A stretch of DNA of 64,000 nt from Octopus sinensis (GCF_006345805.1 NC_043003.1:30132001-30196000), one strand, 5' to 3'. Shown: positions 4,180-56,594, numbered from the stretch's first letter. Numbers and translations are program-made. The notes: generated by a model from the sequence alone, not told the origin.

Positions 4180-5352
4180 TCACTCACCATTGTGAATACG
4201 TCTGTGACGGTTTAAATTCTGATTATCAGCATATGATTTACCACAAATATCACAGCTGTATGGTCTTTCACCTGTGTGACCACGTATATGAAGTGTTAAA
4301 TGACCTTTTTGAGAGAAGGATTTACCACAACTATCACAGTGAAATGGATTCTCACCTGTGTGAATACGTACATGTTGAGTTAGATGACCATTTTGAGAGA
4401 ATGTTTTACCACAAATATCACAGTGGTATGGTTTCTCACCTGTATGCATACGTATGTGTATAGTTAAACTATTACTCACAGCAAATCTTTTCCCACAGAT
4501 ATCACAGTGGTATGGGTTGTCACCTGTATGCATGCGTTTGTGTCTATTTAATGTGCTATTACCAGAGAATGTTTTTCCACAAATATCACAGTAAAATGGC
4601 TTCTCTCCTGTGTGAACTTGTTTGTGACGAGTCAACTTATTAGATTCAGAAAACGTTTTCCCACAGATATCACAATGGTATGGTTGCTCACCAGTGTGAA
4701 TGTGTTTGTGCTTAGTCATACTACCTCTTTCAGAGAATGTTTTCCCACAGACATCACAGTAATATGGCTTTTCATTTGTGTGAATGTATTTGTGTCTATT
4801 CAAATCATAACCCCGGGAAAATGTTTTAGCACAAATTCCACATTGATATGGTTTCTCTCCTGTGTGGACACGTTTATGAACAGTTAACACACTATTTTGT
4901 GAAAATGTTTTACCACAAATATCACAGTGATACGGTTTCTCACCTGAATGAGTATATTTGTGCGCAGACAAATGACCTTTCTGAGAGAATGTTCTACTAC
5001 AAATATCACAGTGATATGGCTTTTCACCAGTATGAATACGTTTGTGCTTGGTCAAATTACTACTGTCAGTGAAAATTTTGCCACAGATTATACATTGGTA
5101 AACTTTCTCCTCTTTCTGAACATTTTTATGCAAAGACAATGAACCATTTTTGGTAATGTTAAAATATTTAAGCTTTGAGTTTGTCTGGTGTAAGTTTTGC
5201 TTAAATAACAAGTTACATTTAGTAAATGTCTTATTGTTGATGTTTAAGTGATATGCTGTTTTCTGTGCATCTACACATGTATGAAGAGATGTGTCACTGA
5301 AGTTGAGCTGTGTTTGAGCATACAATTGACTTTTGTAAAGTTTATCCGCCAT
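4180..5352 (-). CDS. C2H2 zinc-finger protein, paralogue 1 (390 aa, 11 fingers)
   Basis: Intact ATG-to-stop ORF with 11 CxxC-x12-HxxxH fingers and TGEKP-type linkers. Helices: DSSNLTK, QKGHLSA, QNSVLTV, RGYDLNR, ERGSMTK, ESNKLTR, GNSTLNR, VSNSLTI, QNGHLTQ, QKGHLTL, DNQNLNR. Confidence 0.95.
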   Translation of the reverse strand: MADKLYKSQLYAQTQLNFSDTSLHTCVDAQKTAYHLNINNKTFTKCNLLFKQNLHQTNSKLKYFNITKNGSLSLHKNVQKEEKVYQCIICGKIFTDSSNLTKHKRIHTGEKPYHCDICSRTFSQKGHLSAHKYTHSGEKPYHCDICGKTFSQNSVLTVHKRVHTGEKPYQCGICAKTFSRGYDLNRHKYIHTNEKPYYCDVCGKTFSERGSMTKHKHIHTGEQPYHCDICGKTFSESNKLTRHKQVHTGEKPFYCDICGKTFSGNSTLNRHKRMHTGDNPYHCDICGKRFAVSNSLTIHIRMHTGEKPYHCDICGKTFSQNGHLTQHVRIHTGENPFHCDSCGKSFSQKGHLTLHIRGHTGERPYSCDICGKSYADNQNLNRHRRIHNGE

Positions 5353-6459
5353 AGCTTTCTTATAAATCTAGAAAAAGATTATTTTCAAATGTCGAATAAT
5401 AAATAAAGATGCTCTGACACTTTTCCAGATTTACTGCAACTATTCCAGTTTTATCATGTGCATCTCTGTAGCAGGATGGTCACACTGTGTCTCTGCATGT
5501 TGTAAAAGGTATATAAAAAAGTTGACAGCAAGAAGGGGATCTGGCTGTAAAATGCTGCCTCAGAAAACACATGACCCATGCCAGCATGGAAAAGCAGATA
5601 TGAAACTGATGATGATTCTCAACAATTTCTTAAGTCGTAATGCATTTTTTTCTTATAAAAAGTGATATTTGACATCTGTAGATGAGTCAATCATAAAGAA
5701 ACAGTTATAAATCTTTTATTAGTTTTTTTTCTTTCTTGGAGTTAAAGTGGAATTAGAAACTAGCAAATGAACTGACTCCAGTTCTCAGGAAGACAAACAA
5801 ATATGGAAGTCATTACGCCAAGACAGTCCCTATGATATCATGTTTATACTGTAATCTGTTTATAAACTTAATTTAAATTTCACAGAAACTTAATTAAGGT
5901 TATAAAGAACAGTTTTTTTCTTTTGATAATGCCTGTCTTCTGTTTTCAAAATTTGATATATTTCTGGATATATCTTGAATCAGTAATTACCATTTGAATG
6001 TTCCCACAAACTCTGAAATAAAGAATATAAGGTAGAAAGGACAATGAAAATGAACATGTAAGTTATTACAGAAGGACCTTAAACAGACATGAAATAGAAA
6101 GGTAAAAAAAAATACATAGAGGAAAGACACAATTATATGGATAATGTGATAAAAGGATGAGGACTTAAGAAAGGAGATAGAATGGGATACATAAATCTAT
6201 TCTATAATAGTTTAATGAATGTAACTTTTACAAGAAAGCAATTATTAAAATGTACACTACCTAGAAAAGTTTTATAAATTCCAATTTTAATGTATTTCTT
6301 TTTAGCAAAATGTGATTTTCAAGATTTTTTTTATTATTGAAGAGTTCAGCTTCATGATTCAATAACAAAACAAATCTTTATTTACTGTGACATAGTTATT
6401 TAACTCTGCAAGATAGTGATTTTTAATGTTTCTGTCCCTACCTGGCATACCTACAGAAT

Positions 6460-7240
6460 TGTACCCCATCCAACTTTGTTTCCTCATAACTTTCTGAAAA
6501 ACAGATATTTTTAATAAAATTTTTTTAAAAATATGTTTCAGATGGTTTAGATTACAATCATATCAGAATTTGTTAAAATCTTTTTCAGATGTGGTGGGGA
6601 GAAGAGCTTCAGATAATTCTTTTGCTTCAACTTTGTTTCTTCATAACTTTCTGAAAAATTAGTCCTTTTTAATGCAATTGTCTACAAATACCTATCAGAT
6701 TGTGCAAATTATAATTACAACTGAATTTAATGGAATAGGAGTGGGTGGATATATCATACATCTCAATTTTGTTTCCTCATACATTTTGATGATATTGATT
6801 ACAAATTACATAGAAAAAAATATTACTTTGAGAACAATTCTACCGTTTCCTGAAAATTCTCCGAAAGAAATCTTTGTAGAAAGGAGAGTACATTGCTAAC
6901 ACTAATTATTGGTTACATGTTTCTTTCATTAATTTACGGCAGCTTTAATCTCTATCTTTTAAACAAACTCAAATGTAGCCCATACTCTACATGGTTGTTT
7001 AGTATGTTAGAAATAGCAGGGATCATGTGGGCTTCAAAAGTAACCTGTTTTTTAAACATAATTGTAATTTGCATCATCAAAATATATGAGAAAACTAAGT
7101 GGAGATGTGTAAAATATCTCCCACATCCATTCTTTCCCCATATTAAATTCTGATATAATCACAATATACACCATCTGAAAGGTATTTGAAAATTGCATTA
7201 AAAAATACCCCTTTTCAGAAAGTTATGAAGAAAGTCAGAC
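6460..7240. repeat. Degenerate foldback-type repeat (direct units plus one inverted unit)
   Basis: Direct units containing tttgtttc(c/t)tcataactttctgaaaaa at ~6475 and ~6632, and an inverted unit (ttttcagaaagttatgaagaaag) at ~7212. Resembles the 18.9-20.0 kb repeat units. Confidence 0.55.
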
Positions 7241-7594
7241 AGTAAACACTTATGCAGTTCTGCCCTAAATTTACTTACTAATCAAGTTCTATGAGACATA
7301 AATGATAAGAAAATTTAGATATATCAGAAAAATTACACAAATTGAGAATCAAGTGTGTAAATATCATTTAGCAACTTGTAAGTCTTTCTGCTAATAAAAC
7401 AATACATAATCATTTGTATTGGAGCTATGTACAAACAGATAATCCAGGATCAATATCTGCATAAAAAAAAACAATAGTTTCTTTTTTTAATAGATTGTTA
7501 AGGAAAGAATGGTCAATTCTTGTAGCTGTTGTAGGCCCACTGATTGATGTTGTTAGTGTTTCTCTTGAACAGTTGCAGTTTGATTGTTGCAATA

Positions 7595-7985
7595 GGCGCA
7601 GGAGTAGCTGTGTGGTAAGTAGCTTGTTTACCAACCACATGGTTCCAGGTTCAGTCCCACTGCGTGGCATCTTGGGCAAGTGTCTTGTACTATAGCCTCA
7701 GGCTGACCAAAGCCTTGTGAGTGGATTTGGTAGACGGAAACTGAAAGAAGCCTGTCGTATATATATATGCATGTGTGTGTTTGTGTGTCTGTTTGTCCCC
7801 CTATGCTTGACAACCGATGCTGGTGTGTTTATGTCCCCGTTACTTAGCGGTTCGGCAAAAGAGACCGATAGAATAAGTACTGGGCTTACAAAAGAATAAG
7901 TCCCGGGGTCGAGTTGCTCGACTAAAGGCGGTGCTCCAGCATGGCCTCAGTCAAATGACTGAAACACGTAAAAGAGTAAAGAGAG
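7595..7985 (+). mobile_element. tRNA-derived SINE, family B (near full length)
   Basis: Head ggcgcaggagtagctgtgtggtaag...ggttcagtccc with Pol III A/B-box-like motifs, central (TA)(TG) microsatellite and tail aaatgactgaaac..gtaaaagagtaa. A near-identical copy lies at 22.2 kb. Confidence 0.85.
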
Positions 7986-9566: not shown

Positions 9567-9587
9567 CATCGGCCGCGCTTTCGTAAA
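9567..9587 (-). promoter_or_regulatory. Conserved upstream motif of paralogue 1 (TTTACGAAAGCGCGGCCGATG)
   Basis: Lies ~200 bp upstream of the first-exon donor. Near-identical motifs occupy the equivalent position in paralogues 3, 4 and 5. Confidence 0.7.
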
Positions 9588-10044
9588 AGGACCTTTCTCT
9601 CACTCATCATTTTGTTTGATTAAATATACACAAGACGTAGAATGTAAAACCTCCTTTAAATAATACAAATTATGAAGACTGTAAGCAATTCCATTAATGT
9701 TGATATGACTAAAAGGTTTAGAAAGAAACATTTGTAGTGGTAGGTATGCCTGTGTGCGAAGAAATTTGATGTCCAACATGCGGTTACAAGTTCAATTTCA
9801 CTGCATGGCACCTTGGCGATTGTCTTTTACAATTGCTCCAGGCTGACTAAAGCTTTATAAGTGGATTTGATAGACAGAAACTTTAAAAAAGCTTGTTACA
9901 TAATGTGTGTGCGAGTGTTAAAGCCGTCTAAGGATCCATAAATCTGGAAAAAATGCACTTGTATATGTCAGTAGAATGGGTATATTAATTGAAGGTGTAC
10001 AGTATTATATATCCATCACAGCCGATTTTACCAATTGGTTTTGC

Positions 10045-10336
10045 ACGTGGCCGATGCCAGCGCCGCCTCGACTGGCTTCCATGCCGGTGGCACGTAAAAA
10101 GTACCAATCCGACCGTGGCCGTTGCCAGCCTCGCCTGGCACCTGTGCGGGTGGCATGTAAAAAGCACCCACTACACTCACGGAGTGGTTGGCGTTAGGAA
10201 GGGCATCCAGCTGTAGAAACATTGCCAGATAAGACTGGAGCCTGGTGCAGCCTTCTGGCTTCCCAGATCCCCAGTCGAACCGTCCAACCCATGCTAGCAT
10301 GGAGAACGGACGTTAAACGATGATGATGATGATGAT
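10045..10336 (+). mobile_element. (GAT)n-tailed SINE / LINE 3'-end fragment, family A
   Basis: Two gtggccg(a/t)tgccagc...ggtggca(c/t)gtaaaaag units, conserved body, and 3' end cggacgttaaacgatgatgatgatgatgat. Confidence 0.85.
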
Positions 10337-10511: not shown

Positions 10512-10515
<4 letters not shown>

Positions 10516-10575: not shown

Positions 10576-10578
<3 letters not shown>

Positions 10579-14219: not shown

Positions 14220-15278
14220 TTATTCTTTTATTGTTTGTTTTGCATGTGCTTTTTCTTTATGATTAGACAAACTCCTATTCTCATTGTAAGTTTTACTACA
14301 CATATCACATTGATATGGTTTTACACCTGTGTGAACAGGTTTGTGACGATTTAAATTCTGATTATCAGCATATGATTTACCACAAATGTCACAGCTATAT
14401 GGTCTCACACCTGTGTGACCACGTATATGAAGCGTTAAATGACCTTTCCGTGAAAACATTTTACCACAGATATCACAATGGTATGGCTTTTCACCTGTGT
14501 GAATACGTACATGTTGAGTTAAATGACCATTCTGTGAGAATGTTTTACCACAGATATCACAGTGGTATGGTTTCTCACCTGTGTGCAAGCGTATGTGTTT
14601 AGTTAATCCACTTTTGTCAAAGAACCTTTTTTCACAGATATCACAAGGGTATGGTTTCTCACCTGTGTGAATACGTACGTGTTGAGTTAAATGACCATTC
14701 ACCGAGAATGTTTTACCACAGATTTCACAACGGTATGGATTATCACCTGTGTGCATGCGTATGTGTCTAATTAATGTACTGTTGTCAGTAAATGTTTTGC
14801 CACAGATATCACAGCGGTATGGTTTGTCACCAGTATGAGTGCGTGTGTGTCTAGTTAATCTACTATTACTAGAGAATGTCTTTCCACACATATCACAGTG
14901 GAATGGCTTGTCTCCTGAGTGAACATGTTTGTGATTAGTTAAGTTATTACATACAGAGAAGGTTTTCCCACAGATATCACAGTGGTATGGTTTTTCACCA
15001 GTGTGAGTACGAATATGAAGTGTTAAATGACCCCTTTGGGAAAAAGTTTTACCACAGATATCACAGTGAAATGGATTGTCACCTGTGTGAATACGTACAT
15101 GTTGAGTTAAATGACCATTTACAGAAAATGTTTTGCCACAAATGTCACAGTGGTATGGTTTCTCACCTGTGTGCAAGCGTATGTGTTTAGTTAGTATGGT
15201 TTTGCCAGAGAATGCTTTTCCACAGATATCACAGTGATATGGTTTCTCACCAGTGTGAGCATGTTTGTGATTAGTCAT
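14220..15278 (-). CDS. C2H2 zinc-finger protein, paralogue 2 (12 intact fingers; ORF starts at an internal Met)
   Basis: 352-aa ORF. Helices: GKTILTK, VNGHLTQ, QRGHLTL, VCNNLTN, SNSRLTR, DNSTLIR, VNGHLTQ, DKSGLTK, QNGHLTQ, RKGHLTL, DNQNLNR, ENRSLSN. The start Met is the helix Met of a broken finger. Confidence 0.8.
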   Translation of the reverse strand: MTNHKHAHTGEKPYHCDICGKAFSGKTILTKHIRLHTGEKPYHCDICGKTFSVNGHLTQHVRIHTGDNPFHCDICGKTFSQRGHLTLHIRTHTGEKPYHCDICGKTFSVCNNLTNHKHVHSGDKPFHCDMCGKTFSSNSRLTRHTRTHTGDKPYRCDICGKTFTDNSTLIRHIRMHTGDNPYRCEICGKTFSVNGHLTQHVRIHTGEKPYPCDICEKRFFDKSGLTKHIRLHTGEKPYHCDICGKTFSQNGHLTQHVRIHTGEKPYHCDICGKMFSRKGHLTLHIRGHTGVRPYSCDICGKSYADNQNLNRHKPVHTGVKPYQCDMCSKTYNENRSLSNHKEKAHAKQTIKE

Positions 15279-15760
15279 ATTACCTTTTTCAGAGAAAGTT
15301 TTGCCACAGACACCACTGTAATATAGCTGTTTACTTGCGTGAATGGATATGAGTCTGCACAGAAAAGGACTTCTGGAGAATGTTATAGCACAAATACAAT
15401 ATGTTTTGTCTCCTTTATGAGTAAATTTGTGAAGAATTTATTTATCAATTTAGAAGATGTTCTCCTCCAGATATCAAAGTTATATCGACTCTCACCTGAA
15501 TGAATACATTGGTGTGTAGTCAAATGACCTTGCTCAGAGAATGGTCTATTACAAGTATAACAGTGTTATACCAGTATGACACTGGTGCTTAGTCAAATTA
15601 TTGTTACAGAAGAAACATTTGCCACAGATAATGTATTGCTAAATTCTTTCATCTGAGCAATTGTTTAAATAAGGTATTAGATTGAATAAATGTTTATTTG
15701 ATATGATTTCTTATGTGTATCTACCTACACATGTCTGATAATATATTTTCCACATCTCAA
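15279..15760 (-). pseudogene. Decayed 5' coding region of paralogue 2 (leader plus ~5 broken fingers)
   Basis: Manual translation gives IICGKCFFCNNNLTKHQ, CNRPFSEQGHLTTHQCIHSGE and YCICAITFSRSPFLCRLISIH, with lost Cys/His ligands, frameshifts and an in-frame TAA at 15438-15440. The leader aligns with that of paralogue 3. Confidence 0.8.
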
Positions 15761-25515: not shown

Positions 25516-26802
25516 CTATTGTTCTATGGGCAGGCTTTCATGTGATTTTTGTTTATGTTTAGTTAAACTTCTACTTTCAGAATAAGTTTTACCACAGATA
25601 TCACAATGATATGGTTTGACACCTGTATGAACAGGTTTGTGACGATTTAAATTCTGATTATCAGCATATGATTTACCGCAAATATCACAAGTGTATGGTC
25701 TCACACCTGTATGAACACGTACATGAAGTGTTAAATGACCTTTTTGAGAAAATGTTTTACCACAAATATCACAGTGAAATGGATTCTCGCCTGTGTGAAT
25801 ACGTACATGTTGGGTTAAATGACCGTTTTGAGAGAATGTTTTCCCACAGATATCACAATGATATGGCTTTTCACCAGTATGCATGCGTATGTGTATAGTT
25901 AAGCTATTACTCTCAGAGAATCTTTTCCCACAGATATCACAGTGGTATGGATTGTCACCAGTATGCATGCGTATGTGTCTAGTTAAAGCACTATTACCAG
26001 ATAATGTTTTCCCACAGACATAACAACAGAATGGCTTCTCTCCTGTGTGAACTTGTTTGTGACTAGTCAAATTATTACATACAGAGAATGTTTTTCCACA
26101 GATATCACAATGGTATGGTTTCTCACCAGTATGAGTACGCTTGTGTTTAACCATGCTTCCTCTTTGCGAGAATGTTTTCCCACAGACATCACAGTGATAT
26201 GGTTTTTCGCTTGAATGAATGTACTTGTGTCTATTTAAATCAGAACTTCGGGAAAATGTTTTAGAACAAATACCACACTGATATGGTTTCTCTCCTGTGT
26301 GAATACGTTTGTGAACAGTTAATTCACCATTTTGTGAAAATGTTTTTCCACAAATATCACAGTGATATGGTTTCTCACCTGAGTGAATATATTTGTGTTT
26401 AGTCAAATGAGCTTGCTGAGAGAATGCTCTCCCACAAATATCACAGTGATATGGTTTTTCACCAGTATGAATACGTTTATGCTTGGTCAAATTACCACTG
26501 TCAGAGAAAGTTTTACCACAAATTATGCATTGGTAAATTTTCTTTTCTTGCCGAACATTCTTATGCAAAGACAAAGAGTTGTTTTTAGTAATTGTTTTAC
26601 TATAAATTTTTAAATATTTAAGTTTTGAGCTTGTATGAAGTAATTTTTGCTTAAATAAAGCATTAGATTGTGTGAATGTCTTTTTAATGATGTTTGAATG
26701 ATATGGTTCCTTTTGTTTATTTATACATGTCTGTTTAGGTAGGTCACTAGATTCAGGATGTGTTTGCTCACAAACTTGACTCTCACACAGTTTATTCTCC
26801 AT
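25516..26802 (-). CDS. C2H2 zinc-finger protein, paralogue 3 (428 aa, 12 fingers)
   Basis: Intact ORF. Helices: DSGNLTK, QQAHLTK, QNGELTV, RSSDLNR, QRGSMVK, VCNNLTS, GNSALTR, ESNSLTI, QNGHLTQ, QKGHLTL, DNQNLNR, ESRSLTK. Confidence 0.95.
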   Translation of the reverse strand: MENKLCESQVCEQTHPESSDLPKQTCINKQKEPYHSNIIKKTFTQSNALFKQKLLHTSSKLKYLKIYSKTITKNNSLSLHKNVRQEKKIYQCIICGKTFSDSGNLTKHKRIHTGEKPYHCDICGRAFSQQAHLTKHKYIHSGEKPYHCDICGKTFSQNGELTVHKRIHTGEKPYQCGICSKTFSRSSDLNRHKYIHSSEKPYHCDVCGKTFSQRGSMVKHKRTHTGEKPYHCDICGKTFSVCNNLTSHKQVHTGEKPFCCYVCGKTLSGNSALTRHIRMHTGDNPYHCDICGKRFSESNSLTIHIRMHTGEKPYHCDICGKTFSQNGHLTQHVRIHTGENPFHCDICGKTFSQKGHLTLHVRVHTGVRPYTCDICGKSYADNQNLNRHKPVHTGVKPYHCDICGKTYSESRSLTKHKQKSHESLPIEQ

Positions 26803-27262
26803 AATTCTTCTATAAATATTGTAAAATATTATGTTATTTTCAAATGCTTAATGCAGAATAATAAACTTTTAAAACTTCTCAGCAAATACTGTCTTATAAT
26901 GTATTTTTTCATAGAGAGAAAAGTGATATTTGACGAAGTCTGAAAATGTTTCAGACATAAAGGAACAGTTTCAAGATATTTTATTACAAGTTTTCTTCCA
27001 AGATTTCAATCTTGGAACTAAAATTCAGCAAGTAAACTGACTTCAGTTCTCAAGATATACTGAGATATGCTTGACATTACACATAAATCAACTGAATCTT
27101 CATTCTCTATTACTGTTTATAACCTAATTTAAATTCCACAGCAACTCCAATAAAGCTGTTAAGAACATAATATCGATAAGGTCAGTCTTCCGTTGTCAAA
27201 ATGTGACATATTTCTTGATATATCTTGAGTTAGCAATTATCATCTCAGTGTCATCACAAATC

Positions 27263-28388
27263 CTGAAATAAAGAATATAAGGTAGAAAAGTCAATGAGAA
27301 AGTCAACATCAATGTTATCAGTGATAGGACTTGACTAGAAACACATTGAGTACCAAAGAAATCTATATATATATATAATCATATCTATATAGGAAAAACA
27401 AAATAATATGGATAATATGATGTAAGGATGGGAACTAGAAAGGAGATTATAATGGAATATGCAGCTACAGAAAGAGAACAGGAATCATTTTAGTGGGACT
27501 TCAGGGATGATTCTTACAAGGAAAACAATAGAACATGTAATAACGTCAAATTAACTTGAAAAAAAGTTACAACACTGCGTAAACATTTTTCTTACTCTTT
27601 ACATACAATGATGTTTACATTGATGAGTCAAGACGTAGATGTCTCTGAGCAACCACCAACAGCTACTGCAATTTAGGTAAGATAATGGTCTTTGATGCTG
27701 TGGAGGGACGGCCAGGGAAATATTGAATGAAGACTAAAGACAAAACATATTGGAACACTTTATCGAGAGTGCTAAATGACGTAAACTGATAGTTACATTT
27801 TTTTTTCTTTTTCAATAAAAAAAAAACTGAATATGATTAAACAGGCTGAATGCAAGATAGATTTTTATATTTATACATACACACTCTTAAAGACTCTGTA
27901 GGGGGGAAAAATGGATGTCCCAAATATAATTTCACTACAAAATGAATTGTTTGAAATGAGACTCAGCTGACAAAAGAAAGAAAAGAATTATGGAAAGCAT
28001 TGTAGCAATATGTCACCATTAATAATAGATAATTTAATGTCACCATAATTAGTAGCTGTAAATATTGTTTAAACTGAACATCGCTGACCCTTAATTTTAA
28101 AAAAGTAATACATATTGTGAGTTGTTACAGCAGAGACATTTTTACTGGTAACACTGGGGAGTCTCAACGTAGTCACCCGCTCTGCTAGAAATAACAGCCA
28201 CCTTCACTCGAATCACAACTACTGTCTTAAAGGAAATGACACATTAGACAATGTAATCCGAAACAAACATAAAAAAAGACGGGATGGTCAGAGTTGGAAT
28301 GCCTTACATCATAGGTTTGTTCAGTCGGGGCTAATTTGGGATGAAAACAACAATAACATCGTTAGCAACCAACAACAAATCAACTTAC
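27263..28388 (-). other. 5'-UTR intron of paralogue 3
   Basis: Donor AA|GTAAGTTGATT at 28388 and acceptor TTTTCTACCTTATATTCTTTATTTCAG| ending at 27263. Confidence 0.7.
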
Positions 28389-31180: not shown

Positions 31181-34009
31181 TCTATCTAGGTCATCCCACA
31201 GGATACCCCAACACTATTTCCACACGTTTTCCCCATTCATCTCGATCTTCTATAATGGTCCTCAGCTCCTGTACCCCTTCCATACCAGTATCTTCCAGCA
31301 AGTTGTCAATATAGGTCGTCTTCCTCCTTCCTCTCCTGGTTCTTCCTTGTGTTGGTTGCCAGAGAACTAGCTTGTTAGAAATGCAGTGTCCAGCTAGCCT
31401 ACTCCTTCTATGCTGTATCTTCAGTGTTACTTTTGGTAGTCCCTGGTATAAGTCACCATTTGTTGTATGACTCTTCCAGGATCCATTGAGTGCCATTCTA
31501 AGCATCCTCATATAACAAACGTCCAACTGCTACTACAATGCTATAGTGAACGTCATGTTTCAGCCCCATATAGAAGAACAGACTGCTGTTGCCAAAACTT
31601 TCAATTTCCTTGCTAACTTTGAACTCCATACTTTTCTTGATTTGTGGCATGTGCTCCAGGCAGGAGCTCTCCTTGCTTCGATATCTTTTTCAGTACTTTG
31701 TGTCCACACACCAAGGTATTTGAAATTTTCAACTACCTTCAGCAACTGACTGTCTCTCACTGACATAGGCATTTTCATGGTTGAATACTTGCAGCTGTTT
31801 TCTTTGCATTATAGTATAACCCTACCTTCCTTGATTCCTGCTCCAATCTGTTCAGCACCTCCTGTTAGTAATGCCAAGTCATCAGAATAGTCTAGGTCAG
31901 TTACTGTTAATGTCTGATGCTGTCTACTTCTTTGCCTATGTAGTTTGAATCCCAGTTCTTTCTTGCCCTTGAACATTCTACGCATTACATAGTCCAGAAC
32001 GATGGTGAAGAGATAATCTGCTAGCATGTCACCTTGTAATACTCCGGCTTTGATTTCAAAGTATTCTGTCTCTCCATCAGGAGTGATCACTTTCACTCTG
32101 GTGTTCTCGTACAACTTACTTATTTCTCTCAAAATTCTTGGTGGAATATCGTATGCTTTAAGTATCTTCATCATCATTCCTCTATATACTGAATCAAAAA
32201 TCTATATAGATAATGATAGCCTTCCTGTTATGGCCCTTAACTCCCTCTATCAGTCTTGTAAGTGCAACAATGTGAGATGTTGACCGTCCTGATCTGAATC
32301 CATTTTGATTTGGTCGCAATTGTTTGTCTATCTTATGTTGTATTCGGTTAAGTATCATCTTGTTGACTATTTTTGCAACAATGGAAGACAGAATGATCCC
32401 TCTGTAGTTCCCAGTATCACTTAAGTCTCTAGTTTTGGGCAGCGGTAGCAAGTCTATCTCAGACCATTGTTCTGGCTTCAAAATTTCATTTAGTAGTTTG
32501 TTTGCAAATTCAAGGGTAATGTCTAAATCACATCTTTTTAGTACTTCTGGTGGAATGCTGTCAGGACCAGTTTGTTTTCCTTCTTTCAGGTTACTTGTAG
32601 CTCTTTCTATTTCGTTTTTTTGTGAAGTCTTCATCTTCAATTTACAAACTGTCAAGTATCTTTGCTAATTCTTCATTTTCTGTTTCACTGTCAACTTCTG
32701 GATCCTTCCCAAGTAAGTTGTAGAAATGAGTGTACCACTTCTTGATTCTCTCATCCTTTGATTTCCCTTTGATGATTCCCTGCTTTGTGACCAGTGATGG
32801 AGTTAATCAGCCTCCAGCTTTCTCCGTGCTTACTCTTTACATCTGCCTTTCCAACCTGAGAGATCATTTCACCCAGTTCCTCTTCTTGAATCTCTTGGTA
32901 CACCTGTTTTAGATCTCCTTTCTTTGTAAAGTTTGTTTAGTATCATTGTTGGCAGCTTTTTGATAGTTGCTGAATGCCTCTTGTACTTCACTGCATATTT
33001 TTTCTACCCTGGGATCATCAGCTAACTTTCTCCATTTCATCCTCTTCTTTATCGGTATCAGTTTTGCTGCCGCTTCTTCATTTGATTGCACAAACTTGCC
33101 ATATTGCTCTGTAACAGTATTCCTGTTGTTGGATCGTTCAGCAAATCTGTTATGCACTGTAACTGTTTAAAGCTGTTGAAGTTCTGTATTTCACAATGTA
33201 GACTAATTGTAGCATTCTTTTTTTGCTTGTATGTAGACTAATATGTAATCTAGCTGTCACTAAGTGATGGTCACCTACTAAGCTGCTGAAGTTGTTATAT
33301 GCTTCTACATTGTGCACAGATTCTTCCATTTCTTATTAACCAGTATGTAATCAATTTGGGACTGCTACCATTAACGTCAGCGATAAATGTCCATTGTTTT
33401 CCTTTCTTTTTCTTGAACAGAGTGCTAGCAATGCAAAGATTACATTCCACCACATGATCCAGGAGAAGCTGGTCATTCTTGTTAGTCTCCCTATGCATCC
33501 TTGACTAAATGAAGATTAAAATCACTGCATTCTTTGGTAACATGGTGTTTTGGTATTACATTGATGACATTTGTCAGTGTTTCGTCATGCTCCTCTGCAC
33601 ACTTGCCTCCCACTGTGGGTGCATAGTTAATAACTACTGTGGTAGATGGGTTTCTATTGAACATGGCTGTGACTATTCTGTCATTTACTGGTATTACTTT
33701 GGCCAAAGCTTTCTCTGCCAAACCGTTGATTACTAATCCTACCGCTCCTACTGCTTCACCATTAGTACTTCTCTATACACTTGTTGTTATTAGTGTGCAG
33801 CCCTCAAGTCATTCAATGAGAGTAGGGTCTTCTTCATGCACTATCTTGTGTTCAAGTACTCCAGAGTTGTTTAGTTTGCATTTGTTAAAGTCGTTAGCCA
33901 TCTCCAGACGTTTCTCTTTTTTCCTAGGTGTTCTTACATTGAGTGTTCCAATTTGCAGGTACTTTTTACTATTCATAAGTTTTTAAACTAAGATTTATTT
34001 TTAAACATA
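31181..34009 (-). mobile_element. Near full-length RTE-superfamily (RTEX-like) LINE, APE plus RT, degraded, with 12-bp TSD
   Basis: APE: LQIGTLNVRT, DRIVTAMF...NYAPT. RT: GNYRGIILSSIVAK, QNGFRSGRST, GVLQGD, YSDDLAL, FKYLGVW. C-terminus RRGRRKTTYID. (TAGA)n tail. AAATTTAAACTA is duplicated at 31169-31180 and 34010-34021. Confidence 0.9.
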
Positions 34010-34035: not shown

Positions 34036-34460
34036 GCGAACCATACGTTCGTGGTCGTTGCCGGCGCCGCCCTGTCTAGCCTCCGTGTCGGTGGCACGTA
34101 AAAGCACTATCCGTTCGTGTCCGTTGCCAGCCTCGCCTGGCCCCCGTGCCGGTGACACGTAAAAGCACCATCCATTCGTGGCCATTTGCCAGCTCTGTCT
34201 GGCCCTCGTGCCGGTGACACGTAAAAGCACCATCCGTTCGTGGCCGTTTGCCAGCTCTGTCTGGCACCTGTGCGGGTGGCACGTAAAAAGCACCCACTAC
34301 ACTCACGGAGTGGTTGGCGTTAGGAAGGGCATCCAGCCATAGAAACACTGCCAGATCTGACTGGGCCTGATGAAGCCTTCCAGCTTCACAGACCCCAGTT
34401 GAACCGTCCAACCCATGCTATCATGGAAAACGGACGCTAAATGATGATGATGATGATGAT
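34036..34460 (+). mobile_element. Family A element with 4-5 internal ~55-bp tandem units
   Basis: Repeated ccgttcgtggccgttgccagc...gtg(g/a)cacgtaaaagcac units, conserved body and (TGA)n tail. Confidence 0.9.
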
Positions 34461-40512: not shown

Positions 40513-40870
40513 ATCATCATCATCATCATCATCGTTTAACGTTCGTTTTCCATGATAGCATGGGTTGGACAGTTCAACTGGGGTCTGGGAAGCCAGCAGG
40601 CTGCGCCAGGCCCAGTTTGATCTGGCAGTGTTTCTACAGCTGGATGCCCTTCCTAACGCCAACCACTCCGTGAGTGTAGTGGGTGCTTTTTACATGCCAC
40701 CTGCACAGGTGCCAGGCGACGCTGGCAAACGGCCACGATCAGATGGTGCTTTTTACGTGCCACTGGTACGGAGGCCAGTCGGGGCGGCGCTGGTAACGGC
40801 CACGTTCGGATGGTTCTCTTATGTGCCACCGGCACTGGTATCACAGCTACAATTTCCATTGATGTTGATC
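40513..40870 (-). mobile_element. Family A element
   Basis: (CAT)n then cgtttaacgttcgttttccatg..., with 2-3 internal tandem units. Confidence 0.85.
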
Positions 40871-45232: not shown

Positions 45233-45263
<31 letters not shown>

Positions 45264-46815: not shown

Positions 46816-47988
46816 ATGGAAGACAAACTGGAGGAGAGTCAGGCCTGTGATAAAACACAGCCTGAATCTAGTGATGTATCTAATCAGGAGTGTGTAGATA
46901 CAGAGAAAAAAGCTTACCATTTTGACATTCATAAGAAGACATTCTCACAATATAACGTACTTCTTACAAGCATAAAGCTTAAATATTCTAAAATGTGTAA
47001 CAAAACAACTGCTAAGAGCCGTTCATTCTCCAAGGGTATTCAGTCAGATCAGACTGATTTTGAATGCTTAATCTGTGGTAAAATATTCTCTCGGAAATCT
47101 TATTTGACTAGACACAAACGAATACACAGAAGCAAGAAATCATACCGCTGTGATATCTGTGACAGAGCTTTCAATGACAGCAGTACTTTGACGAATCATA
47201 GACGTATTCATACTGATGAGAAGCCATATCACTGTGATATTTGTGGGAGAAGGTTCACTCAATTTGGTCATTTGAGTAGACACAAATATACTCATTCAGG
47301 AGAGAAACCGCACCGTTGTGATATTTGTGGGAAGGCATTCTCACAGGTTGATAGTTTAACTCGTCACATACGTATTCACACAGGAGAGAAACCATATCAA
47401 TGTGGTGTTTGTGGTAAAACATTTTCTCGAAGCTCTTATTTAAGTGTTCACAAATCTGTTCACACCAGAGAAAAGCCACACCGCTGTGACATCTGTGGGA
47501 AAACATTCTCTGGGAGAGGTAACATGACTAATCACAAACGTATTCACACTGGTGAAAAACCATACCATTGTAATATCTGCGGGAAGACCTTCTCTGGATG
47601 CAACAGTTTAACTAGTCACATACAAGTTCACACAGGAGATAAGCCATACCACTGTGATATTTGTGCAAAAACGTTCTCTACCAGTAGTAGATTAACTAGA
47701 CATATACGCACTCATACTGGTGAAAAACCATTCCATTGCAACACCTGTGGTAAAACATTCTCTCAAAATGGTCATTTAACTCAACATGTACGAGTTCACA
47801 CTGGTGAAAAACCATTTCACTGTGATATCTGTGGTAAAACATTCACTCAGAGAGGTCATTTAACACTTCACATACGTGGTCATACAGGTGAGAGACCATA
47901 CAGTTGTGATATTTGTGGTAAAGCTTATGCTGATAATCAGAGTTTAACTCGTCATAAACCTGTGCACACAAATAAGAAAAAATCATGA
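46816..47988 (+). CDS. C2H2 zinc-finger protein, paralogue 4 (390 aa, 11 fingers)
   Basis: Intact ORF. Helices: RKSYLTR, DSSTLTN, QFGHLSR, QVDSLTR, RSSYLSV, GRGNMTN, GCNSLTS, TSSRLTR, QNGHLTQ, QRGHLTL, DNQSLTR. Confidence 0.95.
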   Translation: MEDKLEESQACDKTQPESSDVSNQECVDTEKKAYHFDIHKKTFSQYNVLLTSIKLKYSKMCNKTTAKSRSFSKGIQSDQTDFECLICGKIFSRKSYLTRHKRIHRSKKSYRCDICDRAFNDSSTLTNHRRIHTDEKPYHCDICGRRFTQFGHLSRHKYTHSGEKPHRCDICGKAFSQVDSLTRHIRIHTGEKPYQCGVCGKTFSRSSYLSVHKSVHTREKPHRCDICGKTFSGRGNMTNHKRIHTGEKPYHCNICGKTFSGCNSLTSHIQVHTGDKPYHCDICAKTFSTSSRLTRHIRTHTGEKPFHCNTCGKTFSQNGHLTQHVRVHTGEKPFHCDICGKTFTQRGHLTLHIRGHTGERPYSCDICGKAYADNQSLTRHKPVHTNKKKS

Positions 47989-49404: not shown

Positions 49405-50428
49405 CATTCTAAAAATTAAAAAAAAATTAACAGCTGTTTTGTATAAACCATTGTAAACTTATTTTGGTTCAGCCTTGCCTGCATTACATGATGGTAGAAT
49501 ATTAATAGGATTGAAATTACTTCATACTGAGGGGGAAATATTTCAAAGGGATTACTATGAAATTCATTCTTTTGATTCCAACCTCTCTGACACTACATGT
49601 GATGCTATGACAAACTTCTTATTTTAAAGTGATGTAATTGTTCCATCAAAATTACCTGTTATGTTCCAAACACCAGCTTTATAACAGCAAAGTTATTCTA
49701 TTAAATTATTTCGTTTTAAAATATATTGAAATAGAAAGGCAGTATATTTTCACAGAAATATAGGAACAGAAGGGTTTAGAAAATAATTGAAGATGTAGAA
49801 GAGTACTTGCCTTATTGCCTCTGGTTTACCCAGTTACCATGCTGTTACTAACGAAAGCCTCATGGTTACAGCTTAGTGGTAGTTGATAATGAGCTGTGAA
49901 TAATGGATGAAACATAATGATGGCATAAATACATGGCGTGCAGTTCAATAACATCATTCATAGCCCAATATCTATAAAGGGAATTTCTCACCAGTTTTTG
50001 CAGCAGAGGTCTTTTCATGTTTTAATGTGCACAAATCTGTTAAATATGATGATACACACCTATTATCCATATAAATTAGTTTTGTTAAGAGAACTGAATG
50101 AAATATGCATAATTATATCAAATTAACAATATTTCATTGTGAGAAACTTGGCAAAGGATAGCTATAGTTAAATATCTTTATTTTGAAGATCAAGTTGACT
50201 TAGTCTTTAAGTTTTACCTATTGGTATGTTCATCTACTCAATTTGATTGTTGCAAAAAGTTTAAGTCTACTTTCAATATAGTCACACTATTAGTAAATGT
50301 TCTGTTATTATTCTTAAGTGCTTTAAAATAAATGAGATTATTTTAACATTTAATTGTAAATTATATCAGTAGGCATTGAACATACAAAACATGAAGATTG
50401 AGAGAAGGAATACACTATACACATATCT
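49405..50428 (+). repeat. ~1-kb segment present as a split inverted copy at 59322-59875 and 61635-62108
   Basis: ORFs 49938..50126(+) and 59624..59812(-) translate almost identically, and the flanks align as reverse complements. Confidence 0.9.
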
Positions 50429-52999
50429 CCATCACTTGTAATTTATGATGAAGAAATTCTAAAGATGGCAGAATCATTAGAATATAAGTAAAAATGCTTT
50501 GTGATATTTTTCTAAATGTTCTAGTTCAAATCCTACCAAGGCCCACTTAGCCTTTCACCCTTCTGAGGTCAATAAAAAATATAGTGCAAGTCAAGTACTG
50601 TGGTTGATGGTACCAATAACCATTTTCTTTTAAAAATTGTTGACCTTATGCTTAAATTAGAAGCCATTATTAGTAAGTTCTAAATGGTGGATGCAATAAA
50701 TACTTCCATAACAAGCTACTGACAAAGTAGATTTATTTTACTACAGGATAAAACCTGCTTTGATATCTTGTGAATTTCAGTTTATTATATTACTTTTTTA
50801 ATGATTAGCTGAAGAAGCATGCTTTGTTTAATTGATTCTGTGAGTTTATATTTCAACATTGTACAACATTTTATATATTATTGTATTTTATTTCTCTCAC
50901 TCGATTTGAAAAATTATGAAATTGTAAGCAGTGATGTAGCATGGGTAAGGCCATAGAGGCAGTTATCTGGGTGCAAAATTTAAAAAGAAAAAAAAAGAAA
51001 AATTTTTTTAAAATAGCACTCTCCCCAACAGTACTTGTTTTGCCACTGGTACTAGCAACACATACTATACCACTATTTGTAAACTAGGACTTTTGTAACT
51101 TCTCTATTACTTTGATCACCTGCAAGTAAGGATAGTTTAAGAATAATCATAAATATATTTAAATTATAGTCTCAGGTTTCCAGCATATGGTTAAATAATT
51201 GCCATCAACTTCTGTTTCATTTTATGTGGGCACTTATATGAGAAATAGAAGCTAAATATCCCTCATAACACTCTTATCATGTTAAATAAAGATTTGAAAA
51301 AGATATTGTTTTGCTGCAGTTAAGATGGCATGTGTGGAACGTAAATATACAGCCAAATATTAAGTCCACTTTCGTTAATCAAGTGCTAACAAAGAGCATG
51401 GTCTGTTATGAAGACTTATCAACCTCTCTTTTGGTCATTGAAGAGTAGGTGTGTGAAGGTAGAATTTTTATCTTTAGCTGCCCCTATCACTTTTACTATA
51501 TCTTTCTCCCAAACAGTACGGTGATGAAACAAAACTACTATTTTTCTTATATTATGTCGTGACCCTTCTACAACCAGAGAAAAATCAAGAGGTCAACTTA
51601 TTCACATTAATTTCTGAGCACAGAAGCGAGAAAATAATAGATTTAAGATTTGCTTGACAATGTTGAGAAAAGTGGATTTGGTTATACTCCAATTAGCTAT
51701 AGCTAGAGTATACTGTAGCTGTTTTGCTATATCACTCATCTTCCCAGATAATTTGCTGGAGGCAAAGGATCATTACTAGGAAAACTTGCAGGAACGTTAA
51801 CTACGTGAAAATTGAAAAACGTTCAAAATTGTGAATGAAAAGTATTAAATTGCAGGTAGATGTGATGCAAAACCACGAAAAATAGTGGATATCAGGAGAG
51901 AGAATCTGAGGTGATGTATATGGAACTGGTCAATCCAAGGATATAAAAAATGGCATTTGCCCAAGATACCACCCAGTGAATGAAACCCAGGACTCCGTAG
52001 TGAGTCTGGATAGTTCAATGTTGCTTTATGTGTATTGGCAGCACTGAGTATGCACGTGATTCATTAATGAGCTGTGTATACATATGTGAGAACAGTGCAG
52101 CTGCAGACTTTCTGAGACAAGAAAGTGCATTCCCAATCCATGATATATTTTTTAAATTTTCAAGCAGAAGTGTGCTCACTGTGCCTTGAAAGAATTGCAG
52201 AGGCCAAGTGGGTCTGGCATTGTGGGCGTAGACTTTTGCAGTGCGAATGACATGCTGGGCGTTAAGAGCCAAATTTTCTCTATTTAACTGTGACCATCCA
52301 CGGGTGTTACAGAGGTAAGTTGTATCTGGAAACAAGGCGCTGAAAGCATGATGAGACATCCGATGTGCGTTGAGCCGGAAAAGGAGCTGAATAGGTACAG
52401 ACATGGAAAAACAAGTCAATGAAAACACGTGCATGTGTGTAACTGGGTGTAGGCATGCACACATGTATGTATGAACGTTGTAGTGGAAAGATTAAATAAC
52501 CCACGGAAAATTAAGTAAATCTGCGGAAGCAGCAAACATTCAAAAGAAAACATGCAACCCGTGTTGAGAAAAGTGGATCTGGTTTCGAATAGGCTTTTCT
52601 ATACTGTAGCTGTTCACTACAGTTATGTAGTTAAAAAGTTGCAGGTAGCCGAAATTAAAGCATAAATTAAATTGAAATATACATGCACTTTGTTCTAATT
52701 GCATCTAACAACACATTTACGATTCATAGCCTAAACATATCTAGAATTTTCGGCACAACTTAAACACAGAGATTCCGATATATTTATGTAACGATATGAA
52801 GAGAAGGTAATCTAGTTTTACCAAAACTACTGTTAAAGTGTTAGGGTTATGTGAAGTCAGAGTAGTTTTGGTAAAAGTATATTACCTCCCCGTTATATAG
52901 GTGCGTCGGCACTTCTGTAATTAAGTAGTAGCGAATTTTCTCCTGCAATATTTTTTTAGGGGGAAAAAACAATGTTAGTCATTGACTAATACATATCTT

Positions 53000-53385
53000 G
53001 GGTCTTTTCGGTTTGTACGGCAGTTTTTTTCTAGCGGTGTCATATGAAATTGTCACCCATAATTATGACCCTAGTATCGATGTATTGCATTTCAATCTGT
53101 TTTAGGGTTATGGTCAGGGGGGGGGGTATCTTTTTTTCTTCACAAATGTAAATAAACCCAATCTGTTTCTTAAACGAGGGACATGTTCATACGGCACAGA
53201 ATGTTTTTTTACTTCAATAGATGTATTTGATTGGTTGAAATTGAAGAAAAATAAAAAAAAATATCTTACAAGCTATAGAATTTTCTCAATAAAGCCAAGA
53301 GTACATTCTACCAGTATACGAAGTTTAAAATTTTTTAGTAACCTAGAAATTATGTTAAAAACTGCCGTTCAAACCGAAAAGATCC
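53000..53385. mobile_element. MITE, ~29-bp TIRs, 8-bp TSD CATATCTT
   Basis: Left end gggtcttttcggtttgtacggcagttttt; right end reverse complement ggatcttttcggtttgaacggcagttttt. CATATCTT lies at 52992-52999 and 53386-53393. Confidence 0.8.
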
Positions 53386-53488
53386 CATATCTTTTTTTTT
53401 TCCCCCCTTTACTGCCACAATTATTTTATAGTACACTTTCTAGTGTTCTCCACAGTAAAAATGTTGACGCTCACTTTTTTGTCGATAG

Positions 53489-53507
53489 TACGAAAGTACG
53501 GCTGATG
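53489..53507 (+). promoter_or_regulatory. Conserved upstream motif of paralogue 5 (TACGAAAGTACGGCTGATG)
   Basis: ~130 bp upstream of donor CA|GTAAGT at 53637, which is followed by the conserved intronic gtaacaactcacaatatgta block. Confidence 0.7.
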
Positions 53508-54376
53508 ATGTGATGCAGTGTATCAAATTTCGTCTTATAATTTTCTTTTCTGCGTTATTGAAATTTATCGGATGGCCACGAACAAGATATAATCTCTTCA
53601 TCTCCCAGTATTATGACACTAAATAATGAGAAAACAGTAAGTTATCTGACGTTGTAACAACTCACAATATGTACGCATTAATGGTGAGGTATTATTTACA
53701 TCCTAATTTAATTTCTATTCAAATGTAAACGTTAGTGATTTCCAATTTTGAAAACTATTTGCGGACACTTAAGTATTCTAACTTTGTTATTAGTTGCATA
53801 TTGTCGCAATATTTCCCAAACAAAGGCGTCAGTACTAACTGCTATCTAGACTATCGGATTATACTCACTGGATGATCTATAATGTTTAAAATTTTCGTTG
53901 TTCGTTAATTCACCTGTCAAGTCTTTGATCAGACTTGCGTTAAGTAACGTTGTAATTGAAAATAATTAAATGAAAATGTACATTTTGGTAATCATCATTA
54001 ATAAGTTGCTGAATACATTTCTTTCTCACTTGTTCTGTCAGAGAACTACTGAAATGTTAGTCAGGTGCTAATAAAGACACATTGGACCCATGTTTCCTTT
54101 GTATCTACTTATAGCACTTTTTTATGCACTCAATAGAAAGCACTTGTAGTAACACACACACACACACACATCGCAAGCATATATATCGTCATCGTTTAAA
54201 CATTCACTTTACCATGCTGCACGAGTCAGATGGATTTTTGTTGACGCAGATTTTCTACGACCAGAGGCCCATGTTTTCAAGCGTGGTAGTATTTCCCCAA
54301 GGCCAGGTATATTTTTACAGATGATTAGAAACAAACGATACCACTTTTATAAATACGCGCGCACACACACGTGTTA

Positions 54377-54408
<32 letters not shown>

Positions 54409-54888
54409 ATGTATATTTATATTTAATGTAGGATAAAATTTTTTCGAAAAATTTTTTTATCAATGGCCAGTATATTAAAAAAATACCTTTAAAGGTTAAA
54501 GTTATAAACAACTTATAAATAAGGGCAAACGAAAAAATTTCTAATGCCAAATATGCCGAAATTGGACATATTGTCTATAACCACATAATTTTTCACAATA
54601 CGCACGCTACTCGAAAAAAGGTCGACAGAAATTTCTAAAGAATTCCATTGTTACCATATCGGACCGATTTCAGGGTTAGTTCATAAAAACCCTCCCTTCG
54701 TCAGTGATAAATGTGGCAAAGAAATAAATGAGATACTTACTCATACCCATGGAAGAAACAAAATACTAAGTACCCCAAATACATCCAAAATAGAAATACT
54801 CCAGCCCATTCAAGACACGTGTGATTTGGAAGCATAAGAAAAATTTATCAAATTTTAAAAACTTTTCTTACAAAATATAAAGAAATAT

Positions 54889-54963
54889 ATGGAGGTGAAA
54901 CTTTATGTGAATCAGGTTTGTGATCAAGCACAGCCTGAAACTAATGACATCAAATATGTGTAG
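54889..54963 (+). other. Ancestral N-terminus of paralogue 5, now a 24-codon out-of-frame uORF
   Basis: [24 protein letters not shown] aligns with MEDKLEESQACDKTQPESSDV. A net 7-nt loss relative to paralogue 4 shifts the frame before CVDPQKKSY. Confidence 0.75.
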
Positions 54964-55040
54964 ATCCACAGAAGAAATCATATCTCTTGAACATTATTAA
55001 GAAAACATTCACACAATCAAATGCCATATTGAAACAAAAA

Positions 55041-56594
55041 ATGTTTCCGAAATGTTGGAAGAAGAAATATATTTACAGTAAAACAATTAATAAACTCTCT
55101 AAGAGTACTTTAACAAGTCAGAAAGTTTGTAAATGCTCAGTATGTGGTAAAATATTTTCTCAAAATTGCCACATGACTAAACACAAGTGTATACACAAAA
55201 GCAAGAAAAAACACTATTGTGATATCTGTGGCAGAACCTTCTCTGAGAGCAGTACTTTGACTAATCATAAACGTATTCATACTGGTGAAAAGCCATACCA
55301 CTGTGATATTTGCAGTAGAACATTCACTCAGTATGGTCATTTGAGTAGACATAAATATACTCACTCAGGTGAGAAACCATATAACTGTGATATATGTGGA
55401 AAATCATTCTCTCAGAGTGATAAATTAGCTATTCACAAACGTATTCACACAGGCGAAAAACCATATCAGTGTGGTATTTGTGCTAAAACATTTTCTCGAA
55501 GTTCTGATTTGAATAGACACAAGGACATTCACACAATTGAGAAGCCATACCACTGTGATGTCTGTGGGAAAACCTTCTCTAGAAGAAGTAATATGACTAA
55601 CCACCAACGTACTCACACAGGTGTGAAACCATACTACTGTGAAATCTGTGGAAAAACATTCTCTAGTAAATTATCTACACACAAACGAATCCACACAGGT
55701 GAGAAACCATACCACTGTGATATATGTGGAAAAAAATTCTCTCAGAATGGTCATTTAACTCAGCATTTACGTGTTCACACAGGTGAGAAACCATACCACT
55801 GTGATATTTGCAGTAGAACATTCACTCAGTATGGTCATTTGAGTAGACATAAATATACTCACTCAGGTGAGAAACCATATAACTGTGATATATGTGGAAA
55901 ATCATTCTCTCAGAGTGATAAATTAGCTATTCACAAACGTATTCACACAGGCGAAAAACCATATCAGTGTGGTATTTGTGCTAAAACATTTTCTCGAAGT
56001 TCTGATTTGAATAGACACAAGGACATTCACACAATTGAGAAGCCATACCACTGTGATGTCTGTGGGAAAACCTTCTCTAGAAGAAGTAATATGACTAACC
56101 ACCAACGTACTCACACAGGTGTGAAACCATACTACTGTGAAATCTGTGGAAAAACATTCTCTAGTAAATTATCTACACACAAACGAATCCACACAGGTGA
56201 GAAACCATACCACTGTGATATATGTGGAAAAAAATTCTCTCAGAATGGTCATTTAACTCAGCATTTACGTGTTCACACAGGTGAGAAACCATACCACTGT
56301 GATATTTGTGGTAAAACATTTTCTCAAAGTAGTCATTTAACACTTCATGTACGTGGTCACACAGGCGAGAAACCATATAGTTGTGATATTTGTGGTAAAA
56401 CATTTTATGATAATCAGAGTTTAACTCGTCACATACCTGTTCACACAGGTGAGAAACCATATCATTGTGATATCTGTGATAAAACTTTCTCTAAGAAAAA
56501 GATTTTGACTAATCATAAGCAAAAAGCACATAAAAAGCAAACCATAAAACAAGAGAATAAGTTGGAAGAATTTGTACAAATTATTACTTCATGA
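55041..56594 (+). CDS. C2H2 zinc-finger protein, paralogue 5 (17 fingers; first in-frame ATG 55041; possibly a pseudogene)
   Basis: The ORF track starts at a TTG (54987). Arrangement is 2 fingers + a 6-finger block twice + 3 fingers (QSSHLTL, DNQSLTR, KKKILTN). Confidence 0.8.
55293..56308 (+). repeat. Perfect 498-bp tandem duplication inside paralogue 5
   Basis: 55293-55810 matches 55791-56308 with no difference found by eye; 166 codons = six fingers. Confidence 0.95.

Follow-up and report, generated by a model that had tools for sequence, protein, structure and literature searches.

A 64-kb window of the Octopus sinensis genome (64,000 nucleotides, 100% identical to chromosome CM016865.1 of GCA_006345805.1, 30,132,001-30,196,000; positions below are counted from its first nucleotide) contains five open reading frames (ORFs), g1-g5, that consist almost wholly of C2H2 zinc fingers. 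They are members of a lineage-specific tandem cluster of at least nine Krueppel-type genes for poly-zinc-finger proteins (poly-ZNFs). We consider it probable that the intact members are DNA-binding proteins with a common subsite read by F9, with help from F10-F11, and that a conserved N-terminal leader is the best candidate for their output. Evidence for this reading includes the helix of F9, which has changed almost exclusively at synonymous sites, and the conservation of the intact genes between two octopus species. The five ORFs, with the three consecutive fingers F9-F11 near their C-termini and the leader where one is present, are as follows.

g1: 4180-5352, minus strand; a single intact ORF of 390 amino acids (aa); 11 canonical fingers at 4192-5094, F9-F11 at 4192-4422, 32-aa leader at 5257-5352
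g2: minus strand; an ATG-started ORF at 14220-15278 in a frame open from 15437; a 5'-truncated mosaic paralogue; F9-F11 at 14331-14561
g3: 25516-26802, minus strand; intact ORF of 428 aa; 12 fingers at 25543-26529, F9-F11 at 25627-25857, leader at 26707-26802
g4: 46816-47988, plus strand; intact ORF of 390 aa; 11 fingers at 47065-47967, F9-F11 at 47737-47967, leader at 46816-46911
g5: plus strand; leader ATG at 54889, long ORF at 54987-56594 with an internal ATG at 55041; damaged N-terminus; F9-F11 at 56214-56444, frame-broken leader at 54889-54960

Each of the five ORFs contains 11-15 regular C-X2-C-X12-H-X3-H units and scores far above the cut-offs of the Pfam families zf-C2H2 and zf-H2C2_2. 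The linkers are HTGEKPY/F throughout the arrays, with the variants HTGENPF, HTGVRPY and HTGERPY in the F9-F11 block. Only zinc-finger-type families are among the Pfam hits of the five ORFs, and KRAB, SCAN, BTB and ZAD are not among them; for KRAB (PF01352), g1-g5 gave no match with E <= 1, and SCAN (PF02023) is likewise missing from the hits. The canonical fingers are preceded in g1 and g3 by the leader and two degenerate, zinc-less fingers, and in g4 by the leader and degenerate fingers, so that the N-terminal ~90 residues consist of a 32-residue leader followed by two former fingers without their Cys and His. These decayed fingers can still be aligned with the arrays, at 23-36% identity, and with the first finger of other octopus ZNFs, where it is intact. 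Judged from sequence, this N-terminal stretch does not form a domain of its own.

The cluster comprises nine loci over ~165 kb and is present on both O. sinensis CM016865.1 and O. vulgaris OX597820.1. A tblastn search of the window with g3 revealed no family copies beyond g1-g5, and further paralogues lie to the left (g6 and g7, ~49-72 kb from the window) and to the right (g8 and g9), so the cluster extends in both directions. The orthologous stretch in O. vulgaris, taken from the reference assembly of that species (GCA_951406725; version GCA_951406725.2, OX597820.1), is 98.3-99.5% identical to the window.

The original prediction was that five paralogues share a frozen three-finger block. As to the helices of the block it was right: in all five ORFs, consecutive fingers near the C-terminus bear QNGHLTQ, then QKGHLTL, RKGHLTL, QRGHLTL or QSSHLTL, then DNQNLNR or DNQSLTR, which confirms the pattern QNGHLTQ / [QR]xxHLTL / DNQxLxR. 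Five ORFs are also present, but g2 and g5 are not intact copies. In the four additional paralogues on the same chromosome, outside the window, the block is variant or broken. g6 (420 aa; L006, CM016865.1) has QNVHLTQ, QNTHLKI and DNQHLTR, and g7 (383 aa; L006, CM016865.1) has QNAHLTQ, QSSHLTL and DKQSLTR; g8 (394 aa; L009, O. vulgaris, right of the window) has HKNSLTL at the F9 position, QRGHLRV and a truncated relic of F11, together with a second pair, QSTQLTI/DKQGLSR; and g9 (L009) is a fragmented g5-like copy. The F9 helix is constant at positions -1, 1, 3, 4, 5 and 6 in eight of the nine loci, while the neighbouring helices change. The block as a unit is therefore not frozen, since it varies in g6-g9 and F10 and F11 behave like F1-F7 in the tests described below, but F9 is held by selection.

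Divergence was estimated by pairwise Nei-Gojobori counts of non-synonymous (dN) and synonymous (dS) differences per orthologous finger, with omega denoting dN/dS, and significance was assessed on three alternative sets of phylogenetically independent pairs. Synonymous divergence is 0.3-0.7 in all fingers, those of the block included, with values of 0.36-0.44 in the block versus 0.48-0.52 in the upstream fingers. In the F9 helix of the five genes there are 0 non-synonymous versus 22 synonymous differences (dS about 0.9), and across the five- and seven-gene sets the dS of this helix is 0.6-0.9 with almost no replacements. The upstream helices of the five genes have a dN of 0.29 and a dS of 0.52, that is, an omega of 0.55. 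Gene conversion had been named beforehand as the alternative to selection on the block; because the synonymous sites of the block are as diverged as those elsewhere, its constancy does not come from conversion, and that alternative fails. Per-finger nucleotide identity between paralogues never exceeds 94%, and no conversion tracts were seen. By these counts, the constancy of the F9 helix is due to purifying selection and not to gene conversion, which dS and per-finger identity rule out as the cause of the block.

How far this constraint extends can be seen from the helix omega of each finger in the seven genes, which is 0.05 in F9, 0.26 in F1, 0.41 in F10, 0.48 in F11, 0.5-0.7 in F4-F7, 1.21 in F3 and 1.32 in F2. 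The deficit of replacements in the F9 helix is significant (P = 0.0003-0.004), and the comparison with the F1-F7 helices gives Fisher P = 0.0014-0.09 in independent pairs; the F10 and F11 helices taken together are indistinguishable from F1-F7 (P = 0.4-0.8, independent pairs). Thus, on the substitution counts, F9 is the one finger of the block whose helix is under statistically stronger constraint than the rest, with F10, F11 and F1 intermediate. The framework has an omega of about 0.14-0.20 throughout (about 0.18-0.20 among the five genes), the scaffold of the block being no different, and its deficit of replacements is highly significant (P < 1e-17). Pooled over F1-F7, helix omega is about 0.65 versus 0.19 in the framework, and replacements are enriched in helices relative to framework (odds ratio 2.0-3.4, P = 0.015 to 1e-6). 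An excess of helix change upstream, as first proposed, is borne out in this relative sense, but nowhere does it significantly surpass neutrality, even in F2 and F3 (P = 0.28-0.87, independent pairs). Positive selection in these two fingers was accordingly rejected, although their pooled omega is above 1.

The upstream fingers had also been described as hypervariable, a description that does not fit the data. The arrays correspond finger by finger across the paralogues, with moderate divergence that falls mostly in the helices, and the variants seen are of the following kind.

F1 helix: DSSNLTK, DSGNLTK, DSSTLTN, ESSTLTN
F2 helix: QKGHLSA, QQAHLTK, QFGHLSR, QYGHLSR
F4 helix: RGYDLNR, RSSDLNR, RSSYLSV
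F5 helix: ERGSMTK, QRGSMVK, GRGNMTN, RRSNMTN

From these alignments the upstream fingers of the paralogues correspond to one another as orthologues, and their arrays are collinear, not hypervariable.

Comparison with O. vulgaris provides a separate test. The two species are too close for dN/dS in the intact genes, but the absence of differences can be used as a test of constraint. There are 0 nucleotide differences between O. sinensis and O. vulgaris over the 3633 coding bases of g1, g3 and g4, and the flanks of these genes differ by 0.3-1.0%. At the flank rate ~22 differences would be expected in the three genes together (P about 3e-10; about 0.007 for synonymous sites alone). As zero differences are found where ~22 are expected, the intact genes g1, g3 and g4 are, by this test, constrained.

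Taken together, we propose the following model. Each gene would have one coding exon. Its product would begin with the acidic leader of 32 residues, followed by the two zinc-less relics of fingers and then by 10-12 canonical C2H2 fingers with TGEKP-type linkers between them. The genes arose by old tandem duplication (dS about 0.35-0.7), with later unequal recombination inside the arrays. g1, g3 and g4 would encode sequence-specific DNA-binding factors, in which F9, aided by F10-F11, may read a common subsite, predicted from the canonical -1/3/6 recognition code to be roughly 5'-GAC nGA AGA-3', and the remainder of the site would differ between paralogues via the upstream fingers. Output would not pass through a known effector domain, and by analogy with the FiNZ sequence of fish ZNFs the conserved N-terminal leader is its best candidate.

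The leader follows the pattern ME-x-[KE]-L-C-E-[NS]-Q ... T-Q-x-E-S ... K-x-x-S-Y-H, and the first finger begins directly after it. Of 13 sequences compared, 11 have a leader of exactly 32 residues; the net charge over its first 20 residues is acidic, and its omega within the family is 0.41. It was revealed by an exhaustive search with a profile of the 53 N-terminal columns, which gave 48 weak matches and also brought to light a g5-like copy, P0241. The same leader occurs in octopus ZNFs that are otherwise only distantly related, namely P0128, P0129 and P0140 of O. sinensis, P0139, P0199 and P0270 of O. bimaculoides and P0272 of O. vulgaris, and it heads the long ZNF ORFs of L007 (13 and 35 fingers) and L008, on other contigs; the leader-bearing relatives thus include ZNFs on other chromosomes, in three octopus species. 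The earlier view of the family as effector-less is thus correct insofar as only zinc-finger Pfam families are found in it, but it overlooked this conserved 32-residue sequence common to other octopus ZNFs. A targeted literature search, in literature of incomplete coverage, found no description of the shared leader. Besides those in the window, leaders were located at these positions.

L006: 2095-2190 and 18191-18286
L007: 4130 and 9998
L008: 10001
L009: 8403

It would be tempting to go further and regard the leader as an octopus-specific, ZNF-associated effector motif that does for much of the C2H2 expansion what KRAB, ZAD or FiNZ does elsewhere, with F9 serving as a common DNA anchor and the other fingers setting paralogue-specific targets. 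We put this forward tentatively, as a possibility that we would not expect to hold.

Several points weigh against the interpretation given so far. The selection statistics are drawn from 5-7 non-independent paralogues, without orthologues from distant species, and g8, with HKNSLTL at the F9 position, means that F9, too, is not common to all members. The structure predicted for g3 by AlphaFold2, in which residues 1-88 are disordered and 12 beta-beta-alpha units follow from residue 90 (predicted local distance difference test scores, pLDDT, mostly 55-79), was built on a five-sequence alignment and has low overall confidence. As for the leader, the loci that show it were picked through leader-bearing proteins, and a search with an X-padded profile of the leader only returned two database proteins, both of them part of the query. 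In addition, the ATG is preceded at a distance of 13-22 nt by a pyrimidine-rich YAG that could act as a splice acceptor, and the intervening frame is open. This YAG suggests, as far as such a signal can be read, a non-coding 5' exon; an upstream coding exon is unlikely, since the leader Met is conserved in 13 sequences and both the gene calls and the source-annotated proteins start there.

Three side observations concern the N-terminal region, its 5' flank and a leader-bearing locus. Across the leader and the degenerate fingers (5077-5352, 26482-26802 and 46816-47082) dS is 0.9-1.0, approximately twice that of the finger arrays (about 0.5); the arrays may have been homogenised long ago, synonymous sites may be constrained, or the difference may be noise of the alignment. 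The 5' flank of g1 (5856-6189, minus strand) is homologous to that of g3 (27113-27459, minus strand) at 74% identity, and this segment is a candidate common promoter or 5'-untranslated region of the duplication unit. Furthermore, in the gene model of P0129 (O. sinensis 'zinc finger protein 2 homolog', L006:10001-10330) an intron skips an in-frame TGA in the second finger, so that the locus looks like a leader-bearing ZNF pseudogene.

Albertin et al. are said to have reported a C2H2 zinc-finger expansion in octopus in 2015. Clustered lineage-specific C2H2 expansions in octopus and other coleoids are established, in the passages covered of Holzinger et al. 2025 (PMC12513265), and motif predictions have already led to the proposal that octopus ZNFs bind transposons independently of KRAB (Wells et al. 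2023, PMC10547256). Both precede the suggestion that the locus represents an undescribed system, which therefore falls: the present cluster, which shares with the expansion the octopus genome, tandem poly-C2H2 clusters and lineage-specific duplicates with divergent fingers, belongs to it and is not a new system. Holzinger et al. treat the superfamily by phylogeny and expression and distinguish 16 expansion clades; constraint finger by finger, this cluster and the leader are not described in those passages. Uneven constraint among the fingers of paralogues is likewise known from other poly-zinc-finger expansions (Emerson and Thomas 2009, PMC2604467). Like vertebrate KRAB-ZNF clusters and the other lineage-specific poly-zinc-finger expansions treated there, the octopus genes form tandem clusters, have a conserved scaffold with change at helix positions -1, 2, 3 and 6 among recent paralogues, and gain and lose whole fingers by recombination. 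They differ from KRAB-ZNF clusters in having no KRAB, SCAN or BTB domain, in their single coding exon and in that positive selection is not demonstrable.

The closest parallel for the leader is provided by the FiNZ-ZNFs of cyprinid fish (PMC10547256), which likewise combine a short, acidic, lineage-restricted N-terminal sequence (28 aa; 32 aa in octopus) without similarity to known domains with a long array and many paralogues. FiNZ has an exon to itself, upstream of the one that encodes the array, whereas the octopus leader is in the same exon as the array, and the parallel is one of analogy only. The octopus genes are not FiNZ-ZNFs, which are recognised by a 28-aa sequence on a separate first exon in cyprinid fish; they belong to an octopus, and their leader runs directly into the array. 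The octopus C2H2 expansion is among the largest known outside vertebrates, and it raises the question of how such proteins work when they lack KRAB-type domains. The cluster offers a tractable case, with three intact paralogues, a collinear finger map, one finger held by selection, F2 and F3 as candidates for a change of specificity and a conserved leader. If the leader proves general and functional, it could be a defining motif for octopus ZNFs, as FiNZ is for cyprinid ZNFs; if not, the locus would be a well-behaved example of ordinary poly-ZNF paralogue evolution.

Alternatively, the family might sense transposons independently of KRAB, with the constant C-terminal fingers as an anchor and fast-diversifying upstream fingers tracking transposon families in an arms race. 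It is true that most replacements fall in the F1-F7 helices, with a pooled omega of 1.2-1.3 in F2 and F3, that the genes sit among transposon relics and SINE-like (short interspersed nuclear element-like) repeats, and that the predicted motifs of the octopus ZNF class are enriched in transposon consensus sequences (PMC10547256). However, we regard this scenario as rather doubtful, given the non-significant excess of non-synonymous change in F2 and F3, and given that the copies are old (dS about 0.35-0.7) and the three intact genes identical in two species, unlike what is seen in an ongoing arms race. Moreover, cephalopod C2H2 duplicates are mainly tied to nervous-system expression in the passages covered of PMC12513265.

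Another possibility is that F9, possibly with F10-F11, is a surface for interaction with protein or RNA, and hence the missing effector or oligomerisation domain of the family. Ikaros and Hunchback possess C-terminal dimerisation fingers, and more generally CTCF, with its core fingers, and Ikaros show that an array can have a fixed core or fingers dedicated to tasks other than DNA binding. The octopus arrays resemble CTCF and Ikaros in that fingers of one array are under unequal constraint and may have separate jobs; they differ in that CTCF and Ikaros are single conserved genes, whereas the octopus family consists of tandem paralogues. An interaction surface would be consistent with the constancy of the F9 helix among changing neighbours, with the repeated copying of F9-like fingers within arrays (three in g2 and two in g5) and with the lack of any other recognisable effector. 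Yet F9-F11 are canonical, have TGEKP-type linkers and lie within a continuous array, as is typical of DNA-reading fingers, and their scaffold is indistinguishable from that of the other fingers (framework omega 0.14-0.2). We therefore think this function unlikely and prefer a role of F9 in reading DNA.

It is also highly improbable that the octopus ZNF expansion has left these loci behind as relics without function, conserved by mere inertia. Such a view would account for the 5' truncation and broken fingers of g2, for the leader frameshift of g5 in two species and its broken finger, for the damage in g8 and g9, and for the fact that the exact proteins of g1-g5 are absent from a collection of 15 billion proteins. 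But g1, g3 and g4 keep ORFs of 390-428 codons and all zinc ligands at a dS of 0.4-0.6, the framework omega is about 0.2 with its strong deficit of replacements, and the three genes have accumulated zero substitutions between O. sinensis and O. vulgaris; on this evidence of constraint, the relic reading is refuted for g1, g3 and g4. Barely tenable, finally, is the idea that the block is a by-product of gene conversion or of very recent common ancestry of the 3' ends: the low dS of the F11 helix (0.12-0.23) and a few finger pairs at 93-94% nucleotide identity (g2-g3 F11, g5-g7 F10 and g5-g6 F11) hint at some old exchange, but the synonymous divergence of the F9 helix with almost no replacements, a block dS near that upstream and the lack of any tract approaching identity have largely refuted it.

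The recombination that we invoke in the history of the arrays can be followed in the two damaged copies of the window. g2 is without the leader and F1-F3, and the relics of its F4 and F5 are missing zinc ligands; finger relics in other frames extend to about 15629. Its array is a mosaic in which extra F8-F9-F10-like fingers precede F6, and the DNA of its second finger matches that of g1 F9 at 92% identity. The mosaic (14220-15640) points to unequal crossing-over between paralogues as its likely source. The ATG-started ORF of g2 is not on record as a gene; a 443-aa gene model of O. vulgaris covers part of the interval from g2 to g1, perhaps with g2 itself. In g5, the frame of the leader (54889-54963) ends in TAG after 24 codons, owing to a frameshift relative to the paralogues. 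The frameshift is common to O. sinensis and O. vulgaris, and the lesion therefore predates their split. One finger of g5 has a 2-residue deletion in its helix, and of the three differences in g5 between the species two are non-synonymous, one of which removes a zinc-binding His. Hence g5 is probably a decaying or N-terminally truncated copy, to judge from these lesions. It also contains a perfect tandem duplication on the plus strand.

55296-55793 and 55794-56291, plus strand: two 498-bp units with 0 mismatches, repeating six fingers including F9

O. vulgaris does not have this duplication, and its gene call is accordingly 351 aa long versus 517 aa; the second unit must have arisen very recently or else be an artefact of assembly. 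As the g2 mosaic and the g5 duplication exemplify, the arrays are, on the evidence of their finger order, remodelled by unequal recombination.

The ORFs of g1, g3 and g4 are recorded as gene calls on assemblies, and that of g1 is on record in the O. vulgaris assembly as a 390-aa gene with 0 nucleotide differences. A search with full-length g3 found no close relatives, the list being dominated by long vertebrate ZNFs with summed finger scores; the best octopus match, P0074, is 53% identical and without the triplet. The triplet was also absent from the matches listed for an F9-F12 query, all of which were at most 202 aa long.

Other features of the window and of the loci examined alongside it were noted in passing. 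A scan of the window against Rfam found nothing. Of the remaining features, two are certain or possible mobile-element remains, one is an interspersed repeat and two are rearrangements, and the last adjoins a leader-bearing gene elsewhere.

31191-32655, minus strand, between g3 and g4: broken reverse-transcriptase ORFs (Pfam RVT_1, E = 2.5e-8 and 2e-3) of a decayed retroelement
60511-60846, plus strand: an ORF with HTH_23, HTH_28 and HTH_29 domains, possibly the relic of a DNA-transposon transposase
3040-3318, 10045-10336, 34146-34460 and 40516-40835, both orientations: four copies of an interspersed repeat of ~280 bp, a SINE-like size, 80-91% identical
49406-50428 versus 59322-59875 and 61635-62107: an inverted duplication of ~1 kb around g5, 95-98% identical, the distal copy being split by ~1.8 kb
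about 11796: site at which the window lacks ~1.7 kb that O. vulgaris has between g1 and g2 (L003:1845-3552), inserted in one species or deleted in the other
L007:20326-25389 (O. sinensis CM016888.1): three ORFs with histone-fold Pfam hits (Histone, CENP-T_C), adjoining the leader-bearing ZNF with 35 fingers

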